A stretch of 64,000 bases of DNA. Origin: Octopus bimaculoides. Taxonomy: Eukaryota. The notes beneath the pieces are model-generated. The model searched no databases and had not been told where the DNA came from. It saw only the letters and a program-made list of their open reading frames with translations. Numbering within the stretch: the first letter of the stretch is position 1; each line of letters begins with the position of its first letter. Of the stretch, positions 505 to 59,554 are shown piece by piece. The stretch lies in contig NC_068990.1 of the NCBI RefSeq assembly GCF_001194135.2, positions 65,187,479 through 65,251,478 of the forward strand. Reading direction: 5' to 3'. The translations under genes were made by a program, and so were the position numbers.

Positions 505-3209
505 GTAAATTTTTAAATCTTTATTTGTTATGAGGTAGTTCTACATACAATCACTGCCTTAACCTTTAACTGGTTCAATGGGGTTGATATGACCCCAATC
601 TTTATTTAGAACACTAGATAATCCAAGCCATTACGTTTTATGATTCAATATTCCACCTAATTTTTTTCTTAACTGTTTGCACTCATACAATTTTGTCTCC
701 GTTATTATTATGATTATTACATTCTTTGGCTAGGGGTCAAATTGTCTCTCAGCCTATAATTATCATAATGCACATGGTACAGTTCCAGACAACATGCAGT
801 CTTTTACAAATAGATTTCACCGAAAAATATTCTTACATCTTTCAGGATGTAATACAATTCACATGTTAGAGAGAGAAACAATTTACCATATTTACTCTGA
901 CCATGATAAAAGTTGGTATTCACTTTTCATGTGTACCAATGAAGAGCTAGAGCAGAATAAGAAGAACAATCTATGAGGTTGTAACGAAAGTTCTGTCTGT
1001 TTTTTTTTTTTTTTTAAGGATAATTATAAGACATGATTACCCCAGTCTAGCTTCTAAATGATATTAGTAGCTAAAATATTATTTCTTCATTCAGATGACC
1101 CAAACGTACATGCCAAGTAAAGAGCACATACTGCATGTTTTACTGTTTGAATTCCAGATGGGGAATACAGCAAGATCACTCAACAATACTTATGGAAACG
1201 ATGTGATGAAAGAAAGGACATGCAGAAGATGGTTTTCAGTCTAAAAGATGAAGAGAAGGACACCCCCAAAGGACTCAATTCTGAGGAATTACTAGTTACT
1301 GTTGATGAAAATCCAACCGTTACAACTAGGGAACTGAGCAGAGTTTAATGTGAACCATATGACCATCCATTGTGAAATAATAAGACTTGGTAAAGTCTCC
1401 AAGGCTGGACAATGGGTTCCACATGATCTGTCAGAAAACAATCACAAACAACATGTGGATTGCTGTGTCCCATTGCATTCACATGAATTTCAAACACTTT
1501 TTTTTAGACAGAATCATTACTGGAGATGAGAAGTGGATTCTCTACAATAATGTTAAGTGCAAAAGGCAGTGGCTCAGCCATAATTCAAAACCTATCCAAC
1601 AGCCTTGAAGTCGTCTGCATCCAAAGAAGATTCTTTTGAGTGTATGGTGGGACATGAAGGGAATTGTTTATTATGAGCTGTTAGGTGATAAACAATAACA
1701 GCTGGAGTTTACTACCAGCAGCTAAGATGTTTAAAAACAGTTTTGCAGGAAAAATGGCCTTTGTTGGTAAACAGAAAAAGAATGATCCTGCAGCATAATG
1801 CCAGACTCCACACTGCAAGAGTGACCCAGAATCTCCTAGAAGACTTTGGCTGAGAAATTATGCTTCACCCACCATATTTTTCTGACCTTGCTCCAACAAA
1901 TTACCATCTTTTTAAAAGCTTACAAAATCAATTTGCAGAACTTTGGCTTACTTCAAGAGAAGAGGTTGAAATGAAGCTAGTTTCTTTTTTTGAGTCAAAA
2001 CCAATTGAATTTTATGAAAAGGGTATCAAAATGCTTAGGGAAAGATGGGAAGATGTCACTGAAAAGACTGGTGACTATGTTGATGATTAAAAAACATATA
2101 CAGGGTATTCCAGAAGTCTTGGGCACATTTCAAGTCCTCATATCTGCTGGACTATGATTGGTAGTAAGACGAAACTGGTACCATTTTAAAGCTAAATTCA
2201 TTAAGTTTTTTTGTAATGCTAATGATTTTTTCATATTTTTTCAGAGCCAGTAATGGCGTTCACTCAACCAAAATAGGCGTTTTGCGTCTTTCAATTTGCA
2301 AAAACTGAATCATGGATACTTGTTCAACGTGCATTTCACACAAAATTCCGAAAAAAGGCACCAGAAAGGAAGTCCAAATTGAGATGGCATGGTAAATTCA
2401 CGAAGGATGGATGTTTGTGCCCAGCTAAGAGAACAGAACACTCCTCAACTTCAGATGATATGGTTGAGCGTGTTCAAACTGCCTTCGAGCAGACCTCCTG
2501 TAAATCAATCAGAAGAGCCAGTAGGGAACTTCAGCTTCCTACAACAACTGTTTGGCATATCTTAAAAAGACGACTGCAGATGATACCTTACAAATTACAG
2601 TTAGTCCAAAGTTGCAGGATACTGATGAACCAGATCATCGTGACTTTTGCATTGCAATGCAAGAGAAGTTGGAAGATGACAGATTTGATGACCGGCTTGT
2701 TTTTAGCGATGAGGCAACCTTCCACGTAAATGGCAAAGTTAACAAGCATAACACTCGCATATGAGGTACTGAAAACCAAACATGAACTTCTTGAGCATCA
2801 GTGAGATTCCCCAAAGATGAACATGTTTTGTGCCAGTCCAAGAAAGCTGTCTACGGACCATTTTTCTTTGAAGGAGCAATAACAATGGTGACATGTACCT
2901 CGACATGCTGGAAAACTGGTCAATGGACAAGATGAGTGAGGAAGAGTCTGACGACTTCATTTTCCAACAGGATGGGGCGCCACAGCACTGGAGCCTCAGA
3001 GTTAGACAATATCTGAACACAATACTGCCAGACAGATGGATTGGATGGTCTGGGCGAGATGATCACGGTCTCATGCCCTGGCCTCCCATGTCTCCAGATC
3101 TCACACCTTGCGATTTCTTTTTGTGGGGGTTTGTGAAAGGACTGGTCTGTGCCTCCCCTTCCAAAGATGTGGATGAACTGAAGGCTCAAATAATGAAAGC
3201 TGTTGCAAC

Positions 3210-4186
3210 TGTAGTGACGTCATATTGGCGCCAAAAAGGCATAGTCGCTATTGCTACATCCTTAACCACGCATGCGTGGATTTCAACATCCAAGCGTTCC
3301 CGCTTCTATTCTGTCTCTTACCATGCCAGACAGCGAACAAGCAAGACGGTCTAAAACAAGCTCTCATTGAGTGTGGAAGAAGCAAGTTGTCTCTCCAACG
3401 ATTCATCTCTAGGGACAGTACATCTACATTCAGGCTACTCAGAAACCGGACAATTGGAAGCTGTATATTTTCCACCATAAATAAATATTGTTGTTGTTGA
3501 TCAGTTTGGAGTTCTGCGTTCCGTTCACTTCTAATTTAATATAGGAAAGTCAGGTGTACATCTAATGATGTATAACCCACATTCCTAAAGTGGTGACCCC
3601 GACTAAAGAACGACTGCAGCCATGACGATCTGGACTAATCAGCATCAATAAATATTATGTACTCACTGAAATTGTTCGCATGTGACGAGCATGTTGCTGC
3701 CATTTTTAGCAAGTAGACGACGCTGTGTAAAAATGAATTTGACGTCTCGTAAGGTATTATCGCTGGTATGAGCAACACGAGTTTACGACCACACGCCGCC
3801 GACACCATCATCAACTACGACTAACTTGAGCGTCTCTCAACATTTTCATCACACAAATAGAAAGCTAAGAAAAATTTTTTTTCTGCGATAAAGTTTTTAT
3901 TTTGTCGATGACTTATAGAGCTTGTAAACAAAACACTTCTTCGCTAATAAGACTTTTGTGGTTTTCACACAAGCAACTTCACGGACATTTCCTTTTACCG
4001 ACCTTTTGAACTATTTCAGTGAGATATTAACTCGTTAGCATTTTTCGAACATACAAACTCACATTGTGCCAAGCTAACACAGACGTTTTTTTTCCTTTCT
4101 GACTGTTATTTCCATTTCCTTTCAGCACGTCAAGGTGGTAGGAAAGTCAGGTGTACATCTAATGATGTATAACCCACATTCCTAAA
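3210..4186 (+). mobile_element. Deleted Ty3/Gypsy-type LTR element (5' LTR + PBS + non-coding internal region + last 48 bp of LTR)
   Basis: Starts TGTAGTGACGTCA; AATAAA at ~3480; LTR ends CCTAAA at 3589. The 48-bp block 3542-3589 is repeated identically at 4139-4186. 4-bp TSD CAAC at 3206-3209 and 4187-4190; removing the insert restores the transposase frame KAVATINNAML. Confidence 0.85.
3591..3603 (+). promoter_or_regulatory. Primer-binding site complementary to tRNA-Trp 3' end
   Basis: TGGTGACCCCGAC lies 1 nt after the LTR end and matches the first 13 nt of the known tRNA-Trp PBS TGGTGACCCCGACGTGAT. Confidence 0.8.
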
Positions 4187-4639: not shown

Positions 4640-5240
4640 ATTTGAAACTCACAGCTATGTTTAGAAAATCTAACACTGGCTGAAAGATATTTGTTGATGA
4701 GGAAAATTACAGCTACCAATATCATAAGAAAAATGTCAATGAAACAAAAACATACGGTAGATATGTAGAACAATCTTGCAAAGCAAGAATACATGCAGTG
4801 GAACACAAGAGGTTATGTCTGAGTTAAAAACTACTTCAATTTCAGTATGTGAACCAGCAAGAAGTTTTATTGGAGCTACGATCACTAATGAAGATTGGTT
4901 TTCGATTATTTACATGCCCTCTTTATCATCAATGGGAAGCAATGTACATCAATGGAGACAAAAAGCACAAACGAACCACCAATTCCACAGCAAAGGAATA
5001 ATTTCAAGATACTGGAATCCTACTGTTTTCTTGCAACTGGAGAGAAGAGACTACTAATATTTGCAATGGAAGATGTCTTAGAAGATTTGATACATTTTCC
5101 AAATTGGGCAGCAGATGGTACCTTTAAAATCAGTCCATCAATATATTATCAGCTATATTGTATCCATATCCAAGAAGGTAAATTTAGTATTCCCAGAGTT
5201 TTTGCCCTTCTTCCAGGTAAAACATATTTGTTGCAACTCA
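4640..5240 (+). mobile_element. MULE (Mutator-like) transposase fragment
   Basis: WAADGTFKISPSIYYQLYCIHIQEGKFSIPRVFALLPGKT contains the MULE DGTF first-Asp motif, preceded by a FLYWCH-like ...YSYQYHKK...SCKARIH segment. Frameshifted; no TIRs found. Confidence 0.8.
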
Positions 5241-5271
5241 AACCGCAGCTTATTCTGAAATCTTTCCCCAG

Positions 5272-5502
5272 ATATTTCCTTGGGAATTGAAGAAATCAAA
5301 CTGGCATTGATAAGGCTTAACTATCCTAATCATACTGTAGAACAAAGTTTCCACAAAGAAACATACAATTGAAACATTAAGAAAATCTCTTGAAAAAGCT
5401 GAGTATTTTGAAGCAATTCAATATCTACCTTTGGATAAAAGTGAATTTCATAAAGATGTACTTTAACTATTAGAATGAACTGTTAGAAGTTTTGAAATAC
5501 AG
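5272..5502 (+). pseudogene. Death-domain-like exon, copy B
   Basis: Acceptor tctttccccag| and donor |gtaaat. Translation DISLGIEEIKLALIRLNYPNHTVEQSFH / TIETLRKSLEKAEYFEAIQYLPLD. Confidence 0.55.
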
Positions 5503-6476
5503 GTAAATTTTTAAATCTTTATTTGTTTTGAGGTAGTTCTATATACAAACACCTCCTTAACTCCTAACTAGAACTATGGGGTTGGTATGACCCCCATCCT
5601 TTATTTAGAATAAATAATCCAAGCTGTCAGGTTTTACGATTCAATATTCCACATAATTTATTTTTTTAAAGCTCTTATTAATTGTTCACACTTGCAATTT
5701 TGTCTTCATTATTATGATCATTATTATATCTTTTGGTTTGGGGGCAAATTCAATTCAAGCATATGATGGTCATAATCCACATAGTACAGCTCCAGACAGC
5801 ATGCACTGTATTTTACAAATGGATTTTACCAAAAAAATATTCTGACAACTTTCTTGAAGTGCAATTCTGATATAAGAGACAGAAACAATTTACCATATGT
5901 ACTGTGACCATGAAAGAGATAGTATTCACTTTTCATGAATCTATTAATGAAAAGTTAGAGCAGTATGAGGAAAAAAAAAACTAATTAGAGTCCCCAAAAA
6001 CTTAAGACAACTCATTAATCATAGATTATTAGTATGAATAGTTGAATATGGTTTTGTAAAGTGTACATATCGCCCGTCATTCAACGGCAGCAAAAGTCAC
6101 ATAAAAATTTGCACTAAGTTAGTCTTTATTCAAATCATCCTTGAGCATTTATTAGATCTACAAGCAAAAGCATCTTGTATATGTTCTCCAAACTCTGTAT
6201 TAATAAGGATATATTCTCCCAAAATGCCAGCTACTCACAACACTGCACTTGCTAAATACATGCACTTGTTAGATACAGGCAAACAATTTAATATATTCTC
6301 AGTATTTTAAGCATTTTCCCACCTAAAACTGAACAGACATTCAGCATATAGACATGTGAATGCTTGTCAGACATGATAATGATAATAAAGTAGGCGAAGT
6401 TTGTGATCAATATCTAGCAGCTGTCACAAAAGATATATGGACAGTGCAAAAATAGTGAAATAATTAGTAAAAGGAC

Positions 6477-6859: not shown

Positions 6860-6970
6860 GGACAATACATTATGATTGTATTGTACAGCATACATCAGGC
6901 TGTATTATACTGTAAACATTTTTTCTTTGATCATTAATGTTGTTGCAATCATTTCTTCTATTTTTCCCAG

Positions 6971-7212
6971 ATATTTCCTTGAGAATTAAAGAAGTCAAAC
7001 TGGAATTTATAAGGTTTAACTATCCTAATCACATTGAAGAACTAGGTTTCCACAATGAAACGCACAGTTAAAACATTAAGAAAAGCTCTTAAAGAAGTTG
7101 AGTGTTTTGAAGCAATTCAGTATATACCTTTGGATAAAAAATGAATTTTATGAAGATGCATTTTAACTGTTCAAATGGACTGCTAGGGAAAGGATAAAGG
7201 CTTGAAATATAG
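6971..7212 (+). pseudogene. Death-domain-like exon, copy C
   Basis: Acceptor ttcttctatttttcccag| and donor |gtaaat. Translation DISLRIKEVKLEFIRFNYPNHIEELGFH / TVKTLRKALKEVECFEAIQYIPLD. Confidence 0.55.
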
Positions 7213-8012
7213 GTAAATTTTAAAATTTTCATTTCTTGTGAGGTACTTCTATGTACAAACACCTCCTTCACCTTTAACTGATACAAGAGGATCAATGTAA
7301 TCCCAGCCTTATTTAAGACAGTAGATAATCCAAGCTATCTGCTTTTATGATTCAATATTCTGCCAATTTTTTCTTTTTGTTCTTAACTGTTTACACTCAT
7401 GCAATTTTTGACCCCATTATCAATTTTATCATTATTACATTCTTTGGTTTGGGGTGAAATTCACCTCAAGCCAATATTGATCATAATCGCCATGGTACAG
7501 TGCCAGACAGTGTGCATTGTCTTTTACAAATAAATTTCACCAAAAAAATGTCCTTGTATCTATTAGAATTAGAGACAAACAATTTACCATATTTACTGTG
7601 ACCATGATAGAGTTGGTACTCACTTTTCATAAGCCTACCAATGAAGTGTTAGATCAGTATGAGAAAAAACAAGTAATTAAACTCTCCAAAGACTTAGGAC
7701 TACCTATTATAGGGTGAAGTAATCATAGATTAGCAAGCTTTCCGCACTCTCTCAACACCAGCATAAGTCAGACAAAAATTTGCATTATGTTAGTTTTTAT
7801 TCATTCGATCCTTGAGCAGTTATTAAATTCACAAGCAAAAACATCTCATATAGGTTCTCCCAACTCTCTGCTAATAAGGATACCTTCTCCCAAAATGTCA
7901 GCTATAGGGCTTTCCTATAAGTAGGTTATCTCCCTTGGCTAGGCGGCGCTCCATGTAGGCAATTAAACTTCCGCAGACTATCCACGCTATTGTTATTGTT
8001 TTACGTCTTATC

Positions 8013-9960
8013 ATGGATATAAAGCAGCTCGATGATTCAGCTATCGAAGTACTTACTGTGCCTGAGTTAAAGAAATATTTAAGATTATATGGACAGTATG
8101 TTACTGGAAGAAAGGCGGACTTGATTGAAAGGTTGAAATGTATAAAAATTCTGTCGATGAAGAATGTCAACAAAATAAATTCATCGGACGATACTTCATC
8201 GGAATAAGCAGAAGCTTATATCTCCTCTCGGTGAAATATTGCCTGATCCCAATCTGCTTTCAGCAGATTGGACTAAAGTTCTTTGTAAGTTGCCGAATTT
8301 CACAGATAATGACATTTATAATTACCTCGTACTATGGATGAAGGCAAAGCAACAGTTAAGGAGTGGCATAATTTACCACAACAGACACGTACACAGCATC
8401 GAATACCACGATATTAGTGAAAGCTGCTCTCACTGTATTGTCTGGTGTCTGGTAATCCCTTCGATACCGACATCAAACCCAAAAAAGAATCCTGACCACA
8501 GAGTGTGGGTAATTATGTCAAAGGTCACTGGCAATGTGCATTCAGCTGATTGCAACTGCACTGCAGGGTAAGAGCCTGTTTAAGTATTTTGACTTTCTTC
8601 CCTTGTATAATAAATTGAATTTTTTATGGATGTAAGGAAATAAATTTATAATCAAAACAATAAATAAATGAGTCTTAATTTTGAATATTTTTTTATTCCT
8701 GTCATATTTATCAAATACAAATGCACATACACACATCTCAAGTTTATCTAATAGTCTATTTCTTATTTTAGACAAGGAGAAGCCTGTAACCATATCGGAG
8801 CTTTATTACATGCCCTTGTGGACATAGCTACCAATAAGAAACGTGGGACCTTGGCACCAACTGCCATGAAATGCAAGTGGAATAATCCAAGAAAACGAAA
8901 ACAGAGCCCTAAGAAAGCTGAACAACTGTCATTTGGAAAAAACCTTAGCGATAGTTTTTCAAGTGTAGCAGGTGATACAACTGCAAAGCCCTTTGAGGCT
9001 ACTGTAAATTTAGTACGTTTCAAAGAAAGATTATGCAAAAGAGATTCAAATGCAGGGTGGCTAACTAATTCTGAGAAAGTCAGCAAACTTGATAACACTC
9101 CAGACCAGGGTGTCTCTGCGACGACACAAGTGCCTAATATTATTAAAGACAACATTGACTTTCAATTTCACGACAGCACTAATTTAGATACTGAATCTGT
9201 CAAGGAATTCTTTGACAAATTCTTGAATAATTTAAAGATTAGTGAGGAACAGTGTGTTCAAGTTGAACTTATTTCCAGGGGACAAAACAAAAACAGAACA
9301 TGGAAAGAACAAAGGAAGGGTCGAATTACCAGTTCTAGTTTTGGTCATGTCTTTGTTCGTAAAGACACGACTCCACCGGACAACCTTGTAAAACAAGTAA
9401 TGGGGTATAACAACGAATTTAAAAATAGCCATATCTCCTGGGGTATAAGTCATGAGCCTGCTGTTCGACGATTGTACACAAAAAGGATACAGGCAGTTCA
9501 CCCCAATACAAGTGTGAAGGATTGTGGATTGATTATTAATCCCTCCTATCCATATCTTGGTGCAAGCCCAGATGGATTAGTTGATATACCTAACTTTCCA
9601 GACGGACCAGGATTGCTTGAAATCAAATGTCCATCAAGTGACAAATGGAAACGGTTATCCCCTCATGAATGTGTAAAAGACAGTTCTTTCTTTTGTTCTG
9701 TTAAAGACAATGAAGTTGTGCTGAAAAGACATCACTCCTATTTTTATCAAGTGCAAGGGCAGATGGCATTAACTGGAAGAAAATGGTGTGATTTTGTAGT
9801 TTGGACCCTTAAACATCCAATGTCAGTGGAGAGGATCTACTTTGATGGGAACTTGTGGCTAACAATTGTGGAAAAACTGAAAATATTCTATCTTAGAGGT
9901 GTTCTGCCAGAAGTATTCTCCAGTCAAGTAAAGCGAGATATCCCACTTTATGCAAGCTAG
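8013..9960 (+). CDS. SAP domain - SWIM zinc finger - YqaJ/lambda-exonuclease-like PD-(D/E)XK nuclease; two exons, one apparent frameshift; probably transposon-borne
   Basis: SAP motif LTVPELKKYLRLYGQYVTGRKADLIERL. The SWIM motif CNCTAG|QGEACNHIGALL is split by a GT-AG intron (8568-8771) that preserves frame. Exon 2 is open to TAG at 9960 with QRKGRITSSSFG, WGISHEPA, LGASPDGLV, LLEIKCP and YQVQGQMALTGRKWCDFVVW. There is a frame change between the SAP ORF (stop 8207) and the next frame (open from 8179). Confidence 0.85.
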
Positions 9961-10560
9961 GCATTATGTCCCAGTGTACCTTACATTCCAGCAGTGTACT
10001 GTGTATATTACATCCAGGCTGTGTATGCAAACAGGAACACAAGAGAGAGTACATTATAATATACCTTGCAGGAAACATTCAGCAATATTTTGCAAAAATA
10101 TACATGTATTGTTATTCAAATTTGTTCTTTTGAACACACCATAGATAATATATTTTTTAGGGAATTGAAATTGGTGTGTACGTGTGTGTTTTAAGTATAT
10201 TAAAATTATGTTCTTTGTATCGTTTCTTCACCCATAATAGTAAAGAATTGTCAATTTTTAATAATTATGTACAATATTATATTCAGTTTCATTGAGTGAT
10301 CATTCTAAACATTATAAGGGAGTCTGAATTTCTCAGCAAAACCACATTAGATGATGAATTGCTAGTTGTTGTGTTTTAGGGTATGCAGTTATGAGTTACA
10401 AAGTGGTGGCTGTAAATTGGTCAGTCTAGCACATAATTTCCAAATTTTTGATACTTGGTGAGACATACTTAAAGGCATGACTGTTTTCAAAAATCCAAAA
10501 GGCTAGAGGTCCCTACACAGCAAAATAGAGAAATGTTCAAAACCCATATGGGCTTTCAAA

Positions 10561-10767
10561 AATTATATCATTAAAGGTAAAAAATACGAAACTGTCAAAG
10601 TAAGGTTCAACACTGAAGAAAGAGCCAAAGAGCTCTCAACCAAATCCTTCGAATACAAAGATTTTATCATGGTCCCCACATATCTAGGTTGTAGGGTAAC
10701 CAAAATTAAAATAAAAGATGTGCCTCCTGAGATAGAGATGAAACAGCTTGTATCTGCCATTTTTTAA
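10561..10767 (+). mobile_element. Possible non-LTR retrotransposon ORF1 (RRM-like) fragment
   Basis: Stop-free frame NYIIKGKKYETVKVRFNTEERAKELSTKSFEYKDFIMVPTYLGCRVTKIKIKDVPPEI resembles L1/Tx1-type ORF1 RRM segments; judged by pattern only. Confidence 0.4.
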
Positions 10768-12270: not shown

Positions 12271-13536
12271 AGGGCAAGATGGAAACTCAGGAAAATCATC
12301 TGAACAGAGATTCTATGAGCCATATTTTGTATTCAGCAAACAGAAGAATGAATGGTACAACCCATACTCTGAATCCCAAATGGTTGAGATTGATTGTTCT
12401 ACTACATTGAAGGATGAATGAATAAATAATCTAAGCTTCATCTTTCCCTATTATATATGAGCCAAATCTGCAACATACTCACAATACTTCAATAAGCAAC
12501 ACTCTGCTTTAAACGTCATACTTAGCATAAAGTTATGACAGGATAAGCATACAACTGCTTTCCTTGTTAAAGGCTGCTGTTAATCATTTTTAGTTTAAAC
12601 TGTTAGCACCAGAGTTCACCAGAATACTATCTGATTCATGCAATATTTGAAGACATTTGCATGTCATATGTCCTTCCAACTGAGCATTGATTAGCCTATA
12701 CATGTGAGAAGGAATGAAACAGTAAGCATCTTAAAACAATATATTTGCTTCACAAATACCCATTAAACTATATGTAATTGTTTATCTACACATTACTGCA
12801 CTGAAAATATCTGAAATGGTACACAAGAACTAACTATAAAATATTGCCACCAAACCTAATATGAAAATCATAGTTTCTCAACATTCTGGTGACCCCTTTA
12901 TCAGAAAGGAGAGAACCCAGTTATCAGCAAATTTTAGGATACAGAAGTAACATCTGTGTAGAGATTTTAACATAAAAAAACTGTCTTTCTGATGTCATTA
13001 TTAATATAAGAACAATGTTACAAGGAATGTGTAGCACTATTCACACTGCAATCCATCACAACTACTTACCACATCTATAACTGATGCGACTTAAGACCAG
13101 CTAATTAAAATGTCACTATAATACATAATAATATCTAGATCATACTATACAGTAGTAATCAATAATCCCAATTTATAGGTATGTGGCCTTGTACTCAAGA
13201 AAGACTGTAGGATTACATACAAAGTAACAAGATGTAAAATTTTAGAAGATACAAATACTACAAAGTTTTGACATATATGTCTAAGAAATTTACTACGTAA
13301 TATCTAATTGTATTGGAAATGGAGTATATATGTAGTACAATACTAAACTACATGTCATTGCAATACTAGATTTCTGTACAGATCATATATAATCCAAATA
13401 AAGAATATATGACCCTCGTTACAATTTTGTCACAGAACTGCTGACATCATACTTCCAGTTTATGTTAAATTTATTTCAGAGTAAGTGATGATAGATCTAG
13501 ACATGTTTCATGCTTACATTTCAACAAAAGGCTATA

Positions 13537-15205: not shown

Positions 15206-15987
15206 CAGGGTGGGTGGAAAGTAACTAGGCATTAGAAATTGCTTACAATTCATTAGTATCACTGAAGCCATGACGATTACATCTTTTAAACAGACAACAC
15301 TAATGGGAATTTCTTATTGTCTTATTTTCCAAATAGTCGGTCGCTTGACTGTTCAAGAGCGAGCTAAAATAGCAGCATGCTATGAAGTGTGGAATTCCAC
15401 TGTTTTGGTTCAGAGATGGTGGCATGCATGGAAAGGTAAGCGTGCAACACTACATCCGGAGACAATTAAAAGTTGTCATGCAAAGCTGATGACCACGGGC
15501 TCTGTGAACGATGCAAGAAGTGGCCAGCCAACCAAATCCCAATCAGCGAAGAATGTAGCAACAGTGCAGGAAATGTTTAATCACAGCCTGCAAAAATCAA
15601 CACGTCAAGCAGCTCATGAATGTGAAATAACAAAGAACTGAATTTTCATCCATGGAAACCCCATTACTTGCAAGAGTTAAAACCTGAAGACTGTGACTGC
15701 AGCAGTCCAGAACTACAAGAAGTCCAGATCTCACTCCGTGTGATTTTTACCTGTTGAGTTACAAAAACAAAAAGGTGTACAAGACAAAACCTCACACACT
15801 GGAGGATTTGGAGACACAGATTCAGGAAGTCCTCAATGATATCCCAGATGATGTCCTTCAGAAGGTTGTTCATTCCATCCCTGTCCGTTTGTGAGGAAAC
15901 TGGCTGACACCACCGGTGCTTACATTGAAATATGAAGATTTACTTTCATTTTCTCATGTAATAAAGAAAATGTATCATTTGTTTCAA
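15206..15987 (+). mobile_element. Internally deleted rosa-like Tc1/mariner element
   Basis: Starts TA|CAGGGTGGGTGGAAAG. N-terminal HTH LTVQERAKIAACYEVWNS...STRQAA, then RSPDLTPCDF...GAYIEI*; the catalytic middle is missing and no right TIR was found. Confidence 0.75.
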
Positions 15988-17252: not shown

Positions 17253-18228
17253 CAAGGGTGGGCTGAAAAGTTCATATGTTGACTTTATCAACAGTGCAAA
17301 AGAGGGCAGCTGAATTTAGGAGAGAAAAGGAGAGTCTTGAAGATGATCCAAGGTCTGGACGTTCTGCAACTGACACCACCAAGGAAAACAATCATGTTCA
17401 CTCCATGCCGATGGATGACAGGCAATTGACTATAAATCAAATAACCAATGCTATTAGCACATCCAGTAAAGGTGTTGAGAATATTCTGCACAACAAACTT
17501 GGCATGGCAAAGGCCTTTGCTCAGTGGATGCCATCTCTTCTGACACCTGATCAAAAGCACACCAAGCTGATCACATCACAGAAAAATCTGACATTACTTG
17601 AGGCAGAACCAGCTGGTTTCCTTGAGTGTTTCTAAAACCAGAATGAGTGTTGGTTTCATCACTTTGAGCCAATCCATGCAGTGGAAGCATCCATCCTCAC
17701 CTGCTCAAAAGGTCATTTCATTTGCAGGGAGGGTGATGGCTTCAGTTTTTTGGGATGCAAAAGGCATTGTATTTATTGAATATCTTCATAAGAGCCACAC
17801 CATCAAAGGAGAGTACTATGTAAACTTGCTGAGGCAGTAATGAAAAGCTATCATGATGAAGTGCCCAGGAAAACTGATGTAAAGGCTCATTTTATAAGAA
17901 CAATGCTCCAGCACACAAGTCCTTGGTTTCAATGGCTGCTGTGTGTGTCTGTGGTTTTGAACTGGTTTATCACCCTCTCTATTCTCCTGACTTGTTCCCA
18001 TTTTACTACCATCTGTTTCCCAACAGGATAAAACACTTGGCTGAGAACCAGTATTGTAGTGATGATAACATCTTATCTGCTGTTGATGACTTTTTTCCTC
18101 AACAGGATGAAACCTTCTTCACCAAAGGGATCCAAGCACTGCAACGGAAGACATGTGTGGATGGTAAAAAGGACTATGTTGAAAAATAAACCCCATTTAG
18201 TCAGCCTATAAACTTTTTAACCAAACCT
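17253..18228 (+). mobile_element. Decayed, partly deleted mariner
   Basis: TA|CAAGGGTGGGCTGAAAAGTTCATA with a degenerate right TIR at ~18205-18228; motifs WMPSLLTPDQK, VMASVFWDAKG and YSPDLFPFYYHLF. Confidence 0.8.
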
Positions 18229-21424: not shown

Positions 21425-21897
21425 TTGACAGTGAAATTGAAATCAAACTAAATTCGATGACTGGCACCCATGCCAATGTCGTCTCCTTCATTGGACACGA
21501 AACTCAGCTTGCGAAGATTTATTGGGGCAAGCGAAAGCAAAATCGGGATGGCACCTGTGCCCAGTGTCGCCTTTCTGGCACTTGTGCCTGTGACATGTGT
21601 AAGGATTTTCGAGCGAGACCGTTGCCAGTGCTCCTGGACTGGCTCTTGTGTGGGTGGCACATAAAATACACCATTTTGAGCGTGGCTGTTGCCAGTACTG
21701 CCTGACTGGCCTTCGTGCCGGTGGCACGTAAAAGCACCCACTACACTCTCTGAGTGGTTGGTGTTAGGAAGGGCATCCAGCTGTAGAAACTCTGCCAAAT
21801 CTGGAGCCTGGTGTAGCCATCTGGTTTCACCAGTCCTCAGTCAAATCGTCCAACCCATGCTAGCCTGGAAAGCGGACGTTAAATGATGACGATGATG
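21425..21897 (+). mobile_element. RTE-type LINE 3' UTR with internal tandem units
   Basis: Same tail as 15988, ending ggacgttaaatgatgacgatgatg; preceded by a more decayed tail copy at ~21225-21418. Confidence 0.8.
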
Positions 21898-26305: not shown

Positions 26306-26861
26306 CGAGTGTGAGCAAAAAGTAGGCATAAAGTTGGTTAATAAGTAGAATATTCTTTTCATTTCTCTATTTCTTTTTTAGGTAATCGATTCATAAGACG
26401 ACCAAGGGATCTGCGAGAGATGCCTAGTTCATTGGAAGCTCTCTTTTTTGATTTCTGGGGGCTCTGGGTAAATGCTTGAGCCACAAGAATTTTATTTTCT
26501 TCAGTGGTAACACTGACTGGTCGACCGCTTTTCTGCGCATTACAGACAGACCCAGTCTGCTCAAATTTATCACGTATTCTATATACTGTTAATCTTGATG
26601 GAGCTGGTCTTTGAAATTCTTCAGTCCATTTCTGTCTAACCATTTCTGCATTCCCGGTTTTCCAGTACTGTTTGAGGATCCATTTCCGTTCCTCATTGGT
26701 CAAATTTCCAGCCATATAATAAATATCTGAAATTAGAAATAATTATCTTATTATAGAAAGAATTAGTTAAAAAGAACACAGAATTTTTATCCTCAAAAAA
26801 GAAATAGAGAAATGAAAAGGACATTTCACTCATATTAAACAACTGTATACTTACTTCTGCC
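26306..26861 (-). mobile_element. Internally deleted rosa-like Tc1/mariner element with ~70-bp TIRs
   Basis: ORF MAGNLTNEERKWILKQYWK...SLGRLMNRL covers the DNA-binding region only. Inner TIR segments 26355-26379 and 26795-26819 are perfect inverted repeats; TA at both ends. Confidence 0.85.
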
Positions 26862-34862: not shown

Positions 34863-36098
34863 ATGCCAAAAGAGATAGGAAAATCCTCATACCACTGTGA
34901 CATCTGTAAAAAGGTATTCTCTGGTAAAAGTAACTTAACTGCTCACAAACGTATTCATACAGGAGAGAAGCCATATCACTGTGATATCTGTGGTAAATCA
35001 TTCTCTCAGATAAACTCTTTAACTACTCACAAATATATTCATACAGGAGAGAAACCTTACCATTGTGATATTTGCGGCAAATCATTTTCTCACAAAGGTA
35101 ACCTTGTCATTCACAAACATATTCACACGGGAGAGAAGCCATATCCCTGTGATATTTGTGGTAAATCATTCTCTGTAAATGGGAACCTAATTACTCACAA
35201 ACGCATTCATACAGGAGAGAAACCATATCACTGTGATATCTGTGGTAAATCTTTCTCTCATGGAAATACCTTAACTACTCACAAACACATCCATACAGGA
35301 GAAAAACCATATCATTGCGATATCTGTGGTAAATCTTTCTCTCATGGAAATACCTTAACTACTCACAAACATATTCATACAGGAGAGAAACCATATCATT
35401 GTGATATCTGTGGTAAATCATTCTCCCGGGGTGATAGTTTAACTACTCACAAACGCATACATACAAAGGAGAAGCCATATCACTGTGAGATCTGTGATAA
35501 GACATTCTCTCAAAGTGGTGTTTTAAATATTCACAAACGTAGTCATACAAAAGAGAAACCATATCACTGTGATATCTGCGGCAAGTCATTCTCTCAAACT
35601 GGTGTCTTAACCACTCATAAACGCATTCACACTGGTGAGAAGCCATATCACTGTGACATCTGTGGTAAATCATTCTCTGGAAGTAGTGACTTAACCACTC
35701 ACAAGCGTATTCATACTGGAGAGAAACCATATCACTGTGATATTTGTGATAAATCATTCTCTCAAATAAATCACTTAACTAAACACAAACGTATTCACAC
35801 AGGAGAGACACCATATCACTGTGACATTTGTGGAAGAACATTCTCTGAAACTAGTCACTTAACTGCTCATAGACGTATTCATACAGGAGAGAAACCATAT
35901 TACTGTGATATTTGTGGTGTATCATTCTCTGTGAACTGTAACTTAATGAAACACAAACGCATTCATACAGGGGAGAAGCCATATCACTGTGATGTATGTG
36001 ATAAATCATTCTCTCATGGAAATACCTTAACTACACACAGATGTATTCATAGAGGAGAAAAGGCAAATCGCTATTATATCTGTAGTAAATCATTCTGA
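34863..36098 (+). CDS. C2H2 zinc-finger protein, 411 aa, 14 tandem fingers, no effector domain seen
   Basis: Uninterrupted ORF of CxxC-12-HxxxH repeats with TGEKPY linkers; degenerate finger sequence continues past the stop to ~36230. Confidence 0.95.
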
Positions 36099-48044: not shown

Positions 48045-49463
48045 CTACTGAATAATTGAATAAATATTGTTTTGTTTTGGTTTTTCTCCTCTATGAATAT
48101 GTTTGTGTTTAGATAAGAACCTTCCTTCAGAGAATGATTTACCACAACTATCACAATGGTATGGCTTCTCTCCTGTGTGAATACGTTTGTGTTTAGTTAC
48201 ATCACTATTTTGGTAGAAAGATTTACCACAAATATCACAGTGATATGGTTTCTCACCAGTGTGAATACGTTTGTGAATAGTTAAATGACTGGTTTGGGAG
48301 AACGATTTACCACACACATCACAGTGATAGGGCTTCTCTCCTGTGTGAATGTGCTTGTGAGTAGTTAAGTGACCTGCTTGAGAAAATGAAATACCACATA
48401 TATCACAGTGATATGGCTTCTCTCCTGTATGTATATGTCTGTGTTTAGATAAGTTACTTCTTCCAGAGAATGATTTACCACAGATATCACAGTGATAGGG
48501 TTTCTCACCAGTATGAATGCGCTTGTGAGAGGTTAAGTAGCTTGTTTCAGCAAATGATTTACCACAGATATCACAATGGTATGGTTTTTCACTTGTATTT
48601 TTGTGTTTTTCTTCTGTATGAATACGTCTGTTGTGTATAGTTATGTAACTTGATTGAGAGAATGATTTACCACAGATATCACAGTGATATGGTTTTTCCC
48701 CTGTATGAATACGTTTGTGAGTAGTTAAATGACATTTTTCAGGGAATGATTTACCACAGATATCACAGTGATGTGGCTTCTCACCTGTATGAGTACGTTT
48801 GTGAGAAGTAACATGAACTCTTTGAAAGAAGGACTTACCACAGATATCACAGTGATATGGCTTCTCTCCTATATGAATGTACTTGTGTTTAGTTAAATTG
48901 CCTCCTACGGAGAATGATTTACCACAAATGTCACAGTGATATGGAGTTTCTCCTGTATGAATGCGCTTATGAGTAATTAAATGACTTCTTGTAGAGAATG
49001 ATTTACCACATGTATCACAGTGATAGGGTTTCTCTCCAGTATGAATGAATTTATGTTTATTTAATTTACCTCCTTCAGAGAATGATTTACCACAGATATC
49101 ACAATGATATGGAGTTTCTCCTGTATGAATACGTTTGTGAGTATTTAAGTGACTTTTTGTGGAGAATGAGTAACCACAGATATCACAGTGATATGGTTTT
49201 TCTCCAGTATGAATACGTTTGTGAGTTGTTAAAGGACTTCTTTGAGAAAATGATTTACCACAGATATCACAATGATATGGTTTCTCTCCTGTGTGAATAC
49301 GTTTGTGAGTAGTGAGGTGACCTTTTTGAGAGAATGGTTTATTACAGATATCACAGAGGTATAAAGATTTCCTTATCTCTTGTAGCATCATGTTATCAGG
49401 AAAATCAATTTGTTTGGTTTGCGTTATACATTTAACCTGATTCTCACATAATTCATTTTCCAT
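48045..49463 (-). CDS. C2H2 zinc-finger protein, 472 aa, 15 fingers, short N-terminal leader
   Basis: Intact ORF; finger 9 is HxxxxH with a long linker [13 protein letters not shown]. Probable acceptor at 49769 and exon-1 donor GG|GTAAGT at 51082. Confidence 0.95.
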
Positions 49464-54603: not shown

Positions 54604-55731
54604 CTAGTTCCTCCTGCAACTCTTCTGGACAGTCTCCTTTTCGAAGTTGATGAATACTGCCATAATTCTTGCCTTCAGTTCGTCTTTGATGTTACAAGGA
54701 GTTTTGTTGGTCTCTCGCTCAACTGCGCCCCACACATAATAATCAAGGGGGTTGCAGTCTGGAGAGTTAGGTGGCCAAATGTTAAGTGTGATGTGGTCAT
54801 AGAAATTGTCTGACAGCCATGACTGGGTTCTCCTGCTTGTGTGACATGGTGCAGAGTCCTGTTGCCAGACATAGAGTCTTCCAGTAGCCACCTTCTTGAA
54901 CCAGGGCAGCGCTACCTCCTCCAGGCACTTGATGTAGGCCTCCGTGTTGAGTCTGAGGTCGTGTGTGAAGATGAATGGAGACATAATGTCACCATCACTA
55001 GTGATCACTCCTAACATCATGATGTTGACTGGATGTTTGATTTTTATCACTCTTGGTACATGTTCTGAGGAAATGGTAAGCCAACAGTTGTTCTGTGTGT
55101 TCACAATCTGATTCTAGCAGAAATTTTTCTCGTCTGAGAAAAACCAAAGTATGTTTAGTTGGAGGGGATGCTTGAGTTTGTTCAAAAGCTTCGTAGCACG
55201 GTCTTTCCTCTTGTTCTTGATAGCTTGAGATAAAAATTGGCCCTTTTTCAACTTGTATGAGGAATGCCGAATGTATTCATACACTACCTGTCTGATAAGA
55301 AACTTAGGCACTCCCATGTCCTGGGCAATGGAACTGATTGATTTGGAAGGATTGTTGTCAATTATGGCCTGGATCTCACCAACAAATTCAGGAGTTCTTT
55401 TCTTATCAGAACGATCAGAGTAAATTTTCTGAGCTGCTGTGCCTTTGTAATCACCATTAGACTCTTCAGAAATTTTCCGAATTCTCTGCACTGTCCTCAG
55501 ATTGACACCCAAACACTTAGAAATGTTTGTATTGGAGCTTCCAGTGCAAATGCCAAGCAGTACAGCATGTCGTTTCCAAATTTCTGGCAGAGTGAATTGC
55601 AGCATGGTGTTTTACTCATAGATGGTACCCAACTGACCCTACTACACTGTAGGCAACAAAATCAAAAACAAACAATGTGCAAGTCCAAAATAAAAAATAT
55701 AAAATGGCGACAATTTTCCCATCGCACCCTG
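54604..55731 (-). mobile_element. maT (DD37D) Tc1/mariner element, 3'-truncated
   Basis: TIR TA|CAGGGTGCGATGGGAAAATTGTCGCC at 55731. FFSDEKNF, QQDSAPCH and WPPNSPDCNPLD with 37-residue spacing; the two ORFs are in frame and separated by one TAG at 55114-55116. Confidence 0.92.
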
Positions 55732-58267: not shown

Positions 58268-59554
58268 ATGAAAAAGGAAGGAAAAATTTCATACCACTGT
58301 GATATTTGTAACAAGCCATTCTCTCAAATAAAGAACTTAACTAGACACAAATACATTCATACAGGAAAGAAATCATATCATTGTGATATCTGTGGTGTAT
58401 CATTCTTTGAAAAAGGTAATCTCACTATTCACAAGCGTATTCATACCGGAGAAAAACCGTATCAGTGTGATATCTGTGGTAAATCATTCTCTCAAGTGAA
58501 TCATTTAACTAATCACAAACGTATTCATACAGGAGAGAAACCATATAACTGTGATAAAGCATTCTCTCATGGTATTACCTTAACTACTCACAAGCGCATT
58601 CATACAAGAGAGAAGTCATATCAGTGTGATATCTGTGGTAAATCATTCTCTGAAAATTGTCACTTAATTAAACACAAACGTACTCATACAGGAGAGAAAC
58701 CATATCACTGTGATATTTGTAGCAAATTATTCTCTCAGACTGGTCACTTAACTACTCACAAGCGCATTCATACAGGAGAGAAGCCATATCACTGTGATAT
58801 CTGTGGTAAATCTTTTTCTCAAAATGATCACTTAACTAATCACATACGTATTCATACAGGAGAGAAACCATATACTTGTGACATTTGTGATAAATCATTC
58901 TCTCGTTCTGGTGATTTAACTACTCACAAACGAATTCATACAGGGGAGAAGCCATATCACTGTGATATCTGTGGTAAATCATTCTCTAAAGGATGTAACT
59001 TAAATAAGCACAAACGTATTCATACAGGAGAGAAGCCATATCACTGTAATATCTGTGGTAAATCATTCTCTGAAATAGGCCACTTAACGTCTCACAAACG
59101 TAGTCATACAGGAGAGAAACCGCATCACTGTGATACCTGTGGTAAATCATTCTCTGAATTAAGTCACTTAACTACTCATAAGCGTATTCATACAGGAGAG
59201 AAGCCATATCACTGTGATATCTGTGGTAAATCATTCTCTAGAAGTATTAATTTGAATACACACAAACGTATTCATACTGGGGAGAAACCATATCACTGTG
59301 ATATCTGTGGTACATCATTCTCTGAAAAAGGCCACTTAAATACTCACAAACGTATTCATACAGGAGAGAAACCATATCACTGTCATTTTTGTGATAAATC
59401 ATTCACACATGGAAACACTTTAACTATACACAAGCGTATTCATACAGGAGAAAAACCATATCAATGTGATATCTGTAATAGATCATTTTCCCATAAAAGT
59501 CACCTAACTAAACATGTATGTATTCAGAAGAGTGACTGTATCTGTGTCAGTTAA
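58268..59554 (+). CDS. C2H2 zinc-finger protein, 428 aa, 15 repeats (13 canonical)
   Basis: Intact ORF; repeat 4 lacks 3 codons including one Cys (YNCDKAF) and repeat 15 lacks the second His (HVCIQ). Confidence 0.95.

Follow-up and report, generated by a model that had tools for sequence, protein, structure and literature searches.

Background

The ISL2EU group of DNA transposons is placed in the PHIS (PIF/Harbinger-ISL2EU-Spy) superfamily and is found in animals including oysters, with terminal inverted repeats of 6-259 bp that usually start with GG (PMC4482050, PMC4122938, PMC9179366) and a 2-bp AT target-site duplication (PMC4482050). PIF/Harbinger elements resemble the element described here in having two genes, a related DDE_Tnp_4 transposase and AT-rich targets. 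They differ in that their second open reading frame (ORF) is of the Myb/SANT type, their target-site duplication is 3 bp (TWA) and their transposase is without THAP (PMC4122938). We found no literature that tests the biochemical role of the second ISL2EU ORF in transposition, and our literature search returned nothing on ISL2EU in octopus, on Kolobok together with YqaJ, or on SWIM together with YqaJ in transposons.

The window analysed here is a stretch of 64,000 nt from Octopus bimaculoides (contig NC_068990.1), in which a sequence-only reading had noticed a spliced SAP-SWIM-YqaJ nuclease gene. The segment 7906-10492 of this window is very probably a copy, truncated on the right and immobile, of an ISL2EU-type cut-and-paste DNA transposon with two genes (PIF/Harbinger-related, 'PHIS') of the octopus genome. 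What survives at the locus is the left end, the whole nuclease gene and, on the minus strand, the ~33 C-terminal codons of the transposase; the element has lost its right end and the remainder of the transposase. The features of the locus are as follows.

7904-7905, no strand: AT dinucleotide beside the left end; fits the 2-bp AT target-site duplication of ISL2EU, right-hand partner absent.
7906-7921, plus strand: left terminal inverted repeat AGGGCTTTCCTATAAG; alignable to either end of the elements from Sinanodonta and Mya.
7906-8558, plus strand: 653-bp segment also carried by a high-copy family of short derivatives, which numbers hundreds of copies.
7967-7980, plus strand: subterminal motif ACTTCCGCAGACTA, which molluscan relatives keep at each of their two ends; sole match in the window.
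8013-8567, plus strand: exon 1, with ATG at 8013, SAP at 8049-8138 and the first two SWIM cysteines at 8551-8559.
8194-8207, plus strand: frame change in the mini-repeat TCGGACGATACTTCA; gaps of 21 nt and 2 nt relative to the consensus of the family lead to TAA at 8205-8207.
8568-8771, plus strand: GT-AG intron, phase 2, 204 nt, inside the SWIM motif.
8772-9960, plus strand: exon 2, with the rest of SWIM, a basic linker, the YqaJ/lambda-exonuclease domain at 9301-9780 and the stop TAG at 9958-9960.
10389-10492, minus strand: remnant of the convergent THAP-HTH-DDE transposase, its last ~33 codons (...LKTVMPLSMSHQVSKIWKLCARLTNLQPPLCNS) and stop codon.
10492-10493, no strand: truncation point, where depth drops to single copy; single-copy sequence lies to the right.

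Results and discussion

Structure of the nuclease gene

The ORF layout and intron coordinates bear out the proposed two-exon gene of about 580 codons with a GT-AG intron in SWIM. The reading is in frame 0 from the ATG at 8013 to the TAA at 8205-8207 and in frame +1 from about 8206 to 8567. The intron splits the Gly codon of C-N-C-T-A-G/Q-G-E-A-C-N-H, so written with the slash at the split, and its position is identical in a second cephalopod contig and in Sinanodonta. On the 580-aa read-through translation, Pfam matched SAP (PF02037, 28.6 bits versus a cut-off of 23.9, residues 13-42), YqaJ (74 bits, cut-off 22) and also Viral_alk_exo. Of the three domains for which an HMM search had been suggested, SAP and YqaJ thus pass Pfam. 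The SWIM profile (PF04434) has no match on the window protein, and the closest relative, P0003, is sub-threshold (17.5 versus 19.6 bits). The motif CxCx7CxH itself (C180, C182, C190 and H192, the last two at 8785-8793 in exon 2) is invariant in 10 sequences, and UniRef labels relatives 'SWIM-type domain-containing protein'. Exact-protein look-ups of P0002 and P0097 gave no record.

The lambda-exonuclease-fold catalytic set, which had been read as intact, is so: RITSS, GISHE, SPDG, EIK and YQVQGQ each occur, and the alignment columns that hold them do not vary among 10 molluscan sequences. LHK-Exo (PDB 3syy) is found by sequence with an E of 1e-10, and the fold of P0003 gives a TM of 0.77 to LHK-Exo (E 7e-10) and an E of 2e-8 for lambda exonuclease. 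The gene shares this fold, the catalytic D-E-K and the QxQ motif with lambda exonuclease, LHK-Exo, phage YqaJ and the herpesvirus alkaline exonucleases. Unlike them it is eukaryotic and intron-containing, carries N-terminal SAP and SWIM-like modules and is without a partner single-strand annealing protein. Compared with ISL2EU as described, the second protein is here resolved into SAP, a SWIM-like CxCx7CxH, a basic linker and a lambda-exonuclease domain, with a conserved intron in SWIM.

Related elements in molluscs

Matching elements in two bivalves, together with the transposase remnant at 10392-10492, confirm that the gene sits in an ISL2EU-type context, an association that the sequence-only reading had pointed out. 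In Mya arenaria (6/6 loci) and Sinanodonta woodiana the SAP-SWIM-YqaJ gene is convergent with a gene for a THAP + HTH_Tnp_4 + DDE_Tnp_4 transposase. The orthologous nuclease gene of these loci codes for 565-581 aa and the transposase for 462-521 aa, and inverted repeats with AT next to them enclose the gene pairs. In Mya each copy measures 6485 bp, identity between copies is 99.9% and the inverted repeat is TGTCCTTTCCGATAACT. AT is present on both sides of five of the six Mya copies and of the Sinanodonta element; TA is equally possible there as the target site because the flank reads TATA. A collinear contig from another cephalopod matches the arrangement of the window.

The published ISL2EU definition fits the element (PMC4482050, PMC4122938, PMC9179366): AT stands beside the inverted repeats, and the molluscan relatives show the published layout exactly. 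One difference lies in the repeats, which begin with AGGG (octopus, Sinanodonta) or TGTC (Mya) and not with the usual GG; the left repeat of the window is nevertheless homologous to both ends of the relatives. The other lies in the window copy, which has a 33-codon transposase stump, AT beside the left repeat only and no right end. The complete THAP-HTH-DDE transposase is seen in the Mya and Sinanodonta elements; its THAP and DDE core is absent from the window and is assigned to the octopus element from the relatives and from loose read ends. A horizontal transfer between octopus and a unionid mussel was considered as a possible source of the conserved ends, and the identity matrix, which is star-like (cephalopod-Sinanodonta 53-57%, Sinanodonta-other bivalves 49-52%), does not discriminate.

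These relatives suggest how a complete octopus element would be built and would move. It would consist of a left inverted repeat, the SAP-SWIM-YqaJ gene, the convergent transposase gene on the other strand and a right inverted repeat, inserted at AT, and full-length octopus copies would be expected to show the right end CTTATAGGAAAGCCCT followed by AT. The transposase would bind the terminal and subterminal repeats and cut and paste the element. SAP, perhaps together with SWIM, would keep the nuclease on DNA or chromatin, where it would degrade the broken ends of the donor or of the element as a 5'-3' exonuclease. The most plausible consequence is that repair would be steered to homology-directed gap repair, which would restore the element at the donor site.

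Left end and truncation point

The insertion boundary that had been placed at about 7905 stands: the homology with the tandem module upstream stops at 7904, the left inverted repeat starts at 7906 next to an AT, and DNA depth rises from about 2 to about 180 reads over 7902-7906. The conserved terminal block extends from the repeat to about 7934, and the subterminal motif at 7967-7980 is, from its conservation, a candidate transposase-binding site. A continuation of the upstream module downstream, as expected for a simple insertion, was not found. That module had been suspected of being a MULE transposase from a DGTFK motif, an idea given up when its ORFs had no Pfam match.

The gene had been described as having no partner transposase in view, and this has to be corrected. 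A C-terminal stump of 33-36 codons occupies minus-strand positions 10392-10492(99); by tblastn it is 75% identical to aa 479-514 of the Sinanodonta transposase (E 6e-13). Its depth corresponds to about 4-7 copies. Other octopus copies continue past 10492 with TATTGAAGTTCTTAATTCTTTCTATCTGAC, the reverse complement of which codes for QIERIKNFN of the transposase. Single-copy-depth contigs span 7600-7928, 8554-8627 and 10463-10700, which establishes as real the left boundary, the read-through beyond 8558 and the break at 10492/10493. Used as a protein query, a 47-aa version of the remnant gave no candidate. Searched with tblastn against the window, the Mya and Sinanodonta transposases found only the remnant (10392-10499); an 11-mer match at 12908 was judged to be chance.

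Since most of the transposase gene and the right end have been lost, the SAP-SWIM-YqaJ gene is part of a dead fragment, the second gene of an ordinary ISL2EU-type transposon, rather than a retained host nuclease. This is the outcome, just a truncated copy of a known family, that the sequence-only reading had named against itself. It had instead proposed a recent non-autonomous derivative carrying only the nuclease, which the transposase of full-length copies could move in trans. For such a mobilisable form speak the intact left repeat and subterminal motif and the presence in the genome of a genuine non-autonomous family from the same element. However, it should carry both terminal repeats in the manner of a MITE, and no right repeat or right subterminal motif lies within the 64 kb. 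A pattern search of the window with the left repeat and the subterminal motif found only the left end itself, and an inverted-repeat search of 7850-10650 for a partner of the left end gave only chance-level pairs. Moreover, the 3' end of the transposase is still present, the element breaks off inside its coding sequence and single-copy DNA follows, and the amplified family is the short form (8558 and right end), not the 2.6-kb form. We regard mobility of this copy as scarcely credible; with no right inverted repeat anywhere in the window, it is immobile.

Short derivative family

The segment 7906-8558 is shared with a family of short copies whose right end is the 16 nt of the left repeat (7906-7921) inverted, as seen in an opposite-strand joint 7921<->8558. 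In one short subfamily the inverted left repeat follows directly after 8558, and other copies read TTAAAGCAAGTCACTGAGCATGCGTACATG after it; the continuation of the short family (TTAAAGCAAG...) is absent from the window. It is this family, not the window copy, that resembles MITE-like internal-deletion derivatives, and compared with these it is unusual in its open SAP frame and its strong representation in RNA. Its consensus has an open frame of 175-182 codons that covers SAP and continues as far as the first pair of SWIM cysteines. Transcription of the family starts at a site of its own within the left end, and the family is abundant in RNA and is the source of nearly all RNA reads over 7906-8558; RNA coverage over exon 1 should therefore not be taken as expression of the window locus. 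UniRef holds many O. bimaculoides 'SAP domain-containing protein' entries of 133-182 aa ending in ...CNC, and these short models are products of the family. The family could thus be more than junk and encode a truncated SAP protein able to bind the ends of the family or the full-length nuclease. That such a protein is a dominant-negative regulator of the ISL2EU family and, separately, that the second ORF encodes a 5'-3' resection nuclease with a defined role in repair of the donor site, the first such nuclease from a eukaryotic transposon, we consider long shots.

Frameshift and lesions

The frame change had been called the only lesion of the gene, which understates the damage. At 8194-8200 the window is shorter than the consensus of the family by 21 nt plus another 2 nt, and its protein has about 10 replacements of its own at residues that hardly vary in relatives, G43C (adjoining the SAP domain), R113Q, D123N, L229Q and C460F among them. 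Private nucleotide variants of the locus include A8175, A8236 and T8443. The frameshift itself was to be checked in raw reads; it has no independent support and may be an assembly error. The form at issue reads ...CTTCATCGGAATAAG... / ...ACTTCATCGGAATAAG..., and the alternative reads ...ACTTCAGACAGGAATAAG....

The left 653 bp are a high-copy repeat in a short-read assembly, so that this part, and the frameshift in particular, may have been pieced together from other copies. We give this partial artefact a little less than an even chance. In its favour, none of the contigs from six DNA runs (four from the 2015 sample) bridges the junction (8195-8199), no raw read at a threshold of at least 99% covers 8160-8195 or crosses the junction, and a low-copy contig with the window-specific A at 8236 runs upstream as ...GGACGATACTTCAGACA with the frame kept. 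Against it, 11-18 raw reads span 8198-8200 at a threshold of at least 95%, only 3-5 of them with a 1-nt insertion. Single-copy-depth contigs also cross 7905/7906, 8558 and 10492, and the collinear cephalopod contig agrees. Because the contigs confirm the overall arrangement, any artefact is limited to the small lesion and does not touch the element.

Expression and constraint

The possibility of a nuclease retained on its own, that is, a domesticated or exapted host gene resecting DNA ends or promoting recombination near the ZNF arrays, draws on the intact catalytic residues and on a dN/dS against the second cephalopod copy of 0.19 overall and 0.12 in the nuclease domain. In addition, the ORF at the locus may be open, since the frameshift is unsupported by independent reads. 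The dN/dS and the invariant catalytic residues do indicate that the nuclease family is constrained; the low dN/dS was, however, measured between transposon lineages and is therefore uninformative on the window copy. The RNA-seq check of the 8567/8772 junction also speaks against a host gene. No spliced read was seen at the locus, three raw RNA runs contained no read over 8564-8709, the reads across the acceptor site were unspliced only, and the RNA reads of exon 2 come from another copy because they leave the window sequence at 9890. The gene lies directly behind the left repeat and in front of the transposase remnant, as it adjoins an ordinary THAP-DDE transposase in the relatives, its nuclease part is present in about 2-3 copies, and it has the private replacements at near-invariant sites. 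A domesticated gene would be expected to combine an intact ORF and spliced expression with a single orthologous locus free of transposon ends. We therefore judge domestication to be very unlikely. The gene at this locus does nothing detectable, and its relative preservation reflects youth, not selection at the locus.

Conclusions

The locus is of little importance in itself, as it adds a further decayed copy to a transposon group already described; its sequence should be masked as a repeat and not annotated as a gene. The role of the conserved lambda-exonuclease-type second protein of ISL2EU is better addressed in the young, intact element of Mya arenaria.

Gene structure and domains

The sequence-only reading had described a two-exon gene of ~580 codons with a GT-AG intron, and these reading frames were borne out.

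Features of the element and its gene (window coordinates, strand where assigned, description)
7904-7905, AT on the left side of the element
7906-7921, left terminal inverted repeat AGGGCTTTCCTATAAG, which aligns to either end of the elements in Sinanodonta and in Mya
7967-7980, subterminal block ACTTCCGCAGACTA, aligning with both ends of the same elements
8013, plus, ATG of exon 1, frame 0 running to TAA at 8205-8207
8194-8200, frameshift junction in a variable mini-repeat (TCGGACGATACTTCA)
~8206 to 8567, plus, open in frame +1
8568 (GT) to 8771 (AG), plus, phase-2 intron of 204 nt
8772 to TAG at 9958-9960, plus, exon 2
10392-10492(99), minus, transposase remnant, last 33-36 codons (tblastn, 75% identity to Sinanodonta, E 6e-13)

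In the profile search, the 580-aa read-through passed Pfam for SAP (residues 13-42), YqaJ (362-521) and Viral_alk_exo, and its PDB match was the lambda-type exonuclease LHK-Exo (E 1e-10). The catalytic motifs proposed earlier (RITSS, GISHE, SPDG, EIK and YQVQGQ) are all in the window protein, in columns invariant in ten molluscan sequences. The proposed SWIM finger is based on an invariant CxCx7CxH, but Pfam SWIM had no match on the window protein and the closest relative fell just under threshold. The intron lies at the identical codon in Sinanodonta and in L001, a contig of a second cephalopod with a collinear gene copy. In the AlphaFold model of the Sinanodonta protein (mean pLDDT 84), the predicted C-terminal domain superposes on LHK-Exo (TM 0.77) and on lambda exonuclease.

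Element identity, ends and truncation

The gene neighbourhood of the relatives is decisive for the identity of the element. Bivalves and gastropods have full-length relatives of 565-614 aa (41-51% identity), and the N-terminal part of the nuclease matches many short Octopus bimaculoides proteins, which identifies the window as octopus DNA. All six Mya arenaria loci examined, like the one in Sinanodonta, have a convergent gene after SAP/YqaJ that encodes a protein of 462-521 aa carrying THAP, HTH_Tnp_4 and DDE_Tnp_4. The Mya element is 6485 bp long, with terminal inverted repeat TGTCCTTTCCGATAACT and AT on both sides in five of six copies; both Sinanodonta ends read AT followed by AGGGCATTCCAATAAG. 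ISL2EU is defined in the literature by exactly this layout: its members pair a transposase of THAP-HTH-DDE type with a YqaJ protein and duplicate AT at the target site (PMC4482050, PMC4122938, PMC9179366). Identity among the six fetched Mya copies is 99.9%, and each has both genes called, so the Mya family looks recently active. At the Mya locus L003 (7913-18559), two 6.5-kb copies stand head to tail with a common AT junction.

In the window, homology to the upstream tandem module ends at 7904, in agreement with the boundary of ~7905 noted before, and is followed by AT and the left repeat. We compared window 7896-8015 with both ends at L008 (7889-8003 and 12360-12476) and L004 (7906-8003 and 14300-14405), loci of the unionid mussel and clam relatives. 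Two blocks, terminal CTTTCCgATAA and subterminal ACTTCCGnGGnCTA, are kept at both ends in octopus, unionid mussel and clam, and are likely candidates for transposase-binding sites. Protein identities form a star-like matrix and therefore do not separate ancient lineages from horizontal transfer.

The sequence-only reading had seen no partner transposase; a minus-strand C-terminal remnant is in fact present, with a stop codon directly after its codons. DNA depth drops to single copy at ~10489-10505, and past 10492 other octopus copies carry on into sequence that, read on the opposite strand, codes for QIERIKNFN, the residues expected upstream in the transposase; hence the element is cut off at 10492/10493. 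The 64-kb window held no right repeat, second subterminal motif or further transposase fragment. The joins at 7905/7906, 8558 and 10492 are real, since contigs at single-copy depth cross each of them.

Copy number and the short family

Hundreds of copies of 7906-8558 exist in the genome, with ~150-240 raw DNA reads vs ~1 in the flanks and a contig word depth of thousands vs 12-14; the first ~50 bp (7906-7955) are more abundant still, and 8559-10492 has only about 2-7 copies. After 8558 most of these copies continue with TTAAAGCAAGTCACTGAGCATGCG..., the continuation reading TTAAAGCAAGTCACTGAGCATGCGTACATG, and a subset passes directly into the inverted left repeat (joint 7921 to 8558). They constitute a short non-autonomous derivative family whose SAP frame is still open and ends ...HSADCNC*. 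The family is plentiful in RNA runs, and many of the Octopus bimaculoides entries named 'SAP domain-containing protein' in UniRef stem from it.

Frame change and constraint

Of the family consensus (...SSDDKSEVSDDTSDRNKQK...), 21 nt and another 2 nt are missing from the mini-repeat in the window, and their absence gives the frame change. The junction received no independent support: no contig bridged 8195-8199 in six DNA runs (four from the 2015 sample), and no raw read crossed it at >= 99%. A low-copy, lineage-matched contig has the window-specific A at 8236 and, upstream of it, the frame-preserving form. The chances that the frameshift is an assembly error are roughly even. Nor is it the only lesion, as had been claimed, because ~10 private replacements fall at near-invariant positions (including G43C, R113Q, D123N, L229Q, C460F and R570Q). 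Two Arg-to-Trp changes set the window copy apart from both the second cephalopod's copy and the sequences of the short family, and several private changes are CpG-type transitions, as neutral decay predicts.

Against the L001 copy, dN/dS was 0.19 for the gene as a whole, 0.12 for the nuclease domain and 0.145 for exon 1 (dS 0.67), with 59% identity in the intron and 79% in the 5' terminal region. The dN/dS check thus shows a constrained family with a nuclease protein that the transposon lineage needs, but the low ratio is no proof of selection on the window copy.

RNA at the locus

On exon 1, almost every RNA read was a 95-99% match that departs from the window sequence at 8558 and runs on into that of the short family (43-74 reads per run), and no RNA read fell on 8564-8709 in three raw runs. 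Reads over the end of exon 2 depart after 9890 and continue as CAGGGTGGGGCATAAATACTGTTACAAAAG (4 and 7 reads in two runs), so their source is another copy; the transcribed nuclease gene is a different, rearranged copy. The suggested 8567/8772 junction had no spliced read, and the two reads over the acceptor were both unspliced. Together these exits, the empty interval and the unspliced reads give no evidence of expression or splicing here.

Surroundings

Upstream of the element are three copies of a ~1 kb unit, 75-80% similar (25-969, 5260-6233 and 6866-7904), of which the third stops right at the insertion point. A DGTFK-type motif occurs in an ORF at 4895-5290; nothing passed Pfam in this region, including that ORF. 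Three long C2H2 zinc-finger ORFs (34863-36098, plus; 48045-49463, minus; 58268-59554, plus) are intact at 411-472 aa and typical of octopus ZNF expansions, and mariner-like transposase remnants lie among the ZNF ORFs (2379-3354, 15270-15641, 17276-17635, 26359-26715, 54604-55605). An ORF with the motif LAEFLQLDALPN..HSESVVGAFTCH recurs (21448-21798, 36490-, 45262-) and adjoins assembly gaps. A perfect 30-nt palindrome, AGGTTCGTCCATCGATCGATGGACGAACCT, occurs on loose read ends of runs X21-X23 ('GENOMIC OTHER') at many unrelated positions (for example window 7950, 7958, 8258, 8460 and 8511), and resembles a proximity-ligation bridge, in other words an artefact of the library that does not belong to the genome.

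Discussion

The window copy belongs to a known transposon group and is truncated and immobile. The earlier idea of an orphan or retained nuclease accordingly gives way to a truncated copy of a known family, the outcome which that reading had itself set against it. What the data show is the architecture of the element and the conservation of the catalytic residues. In a complete element, the THAP-DDE transposase would bind the terminal and subterminal repeats and cut and paste the element at AT, and the 5'-3' exonuclease, tethered by SAP/SWIM, may resect the broken ends. Resection would probably favour homology-directed repair, restoring the element at the donor site; we found no experimental test of this resection role in the accessible literature. 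The transcribed, ORF-preserving short derivative family is the one mildly unusual by-product.
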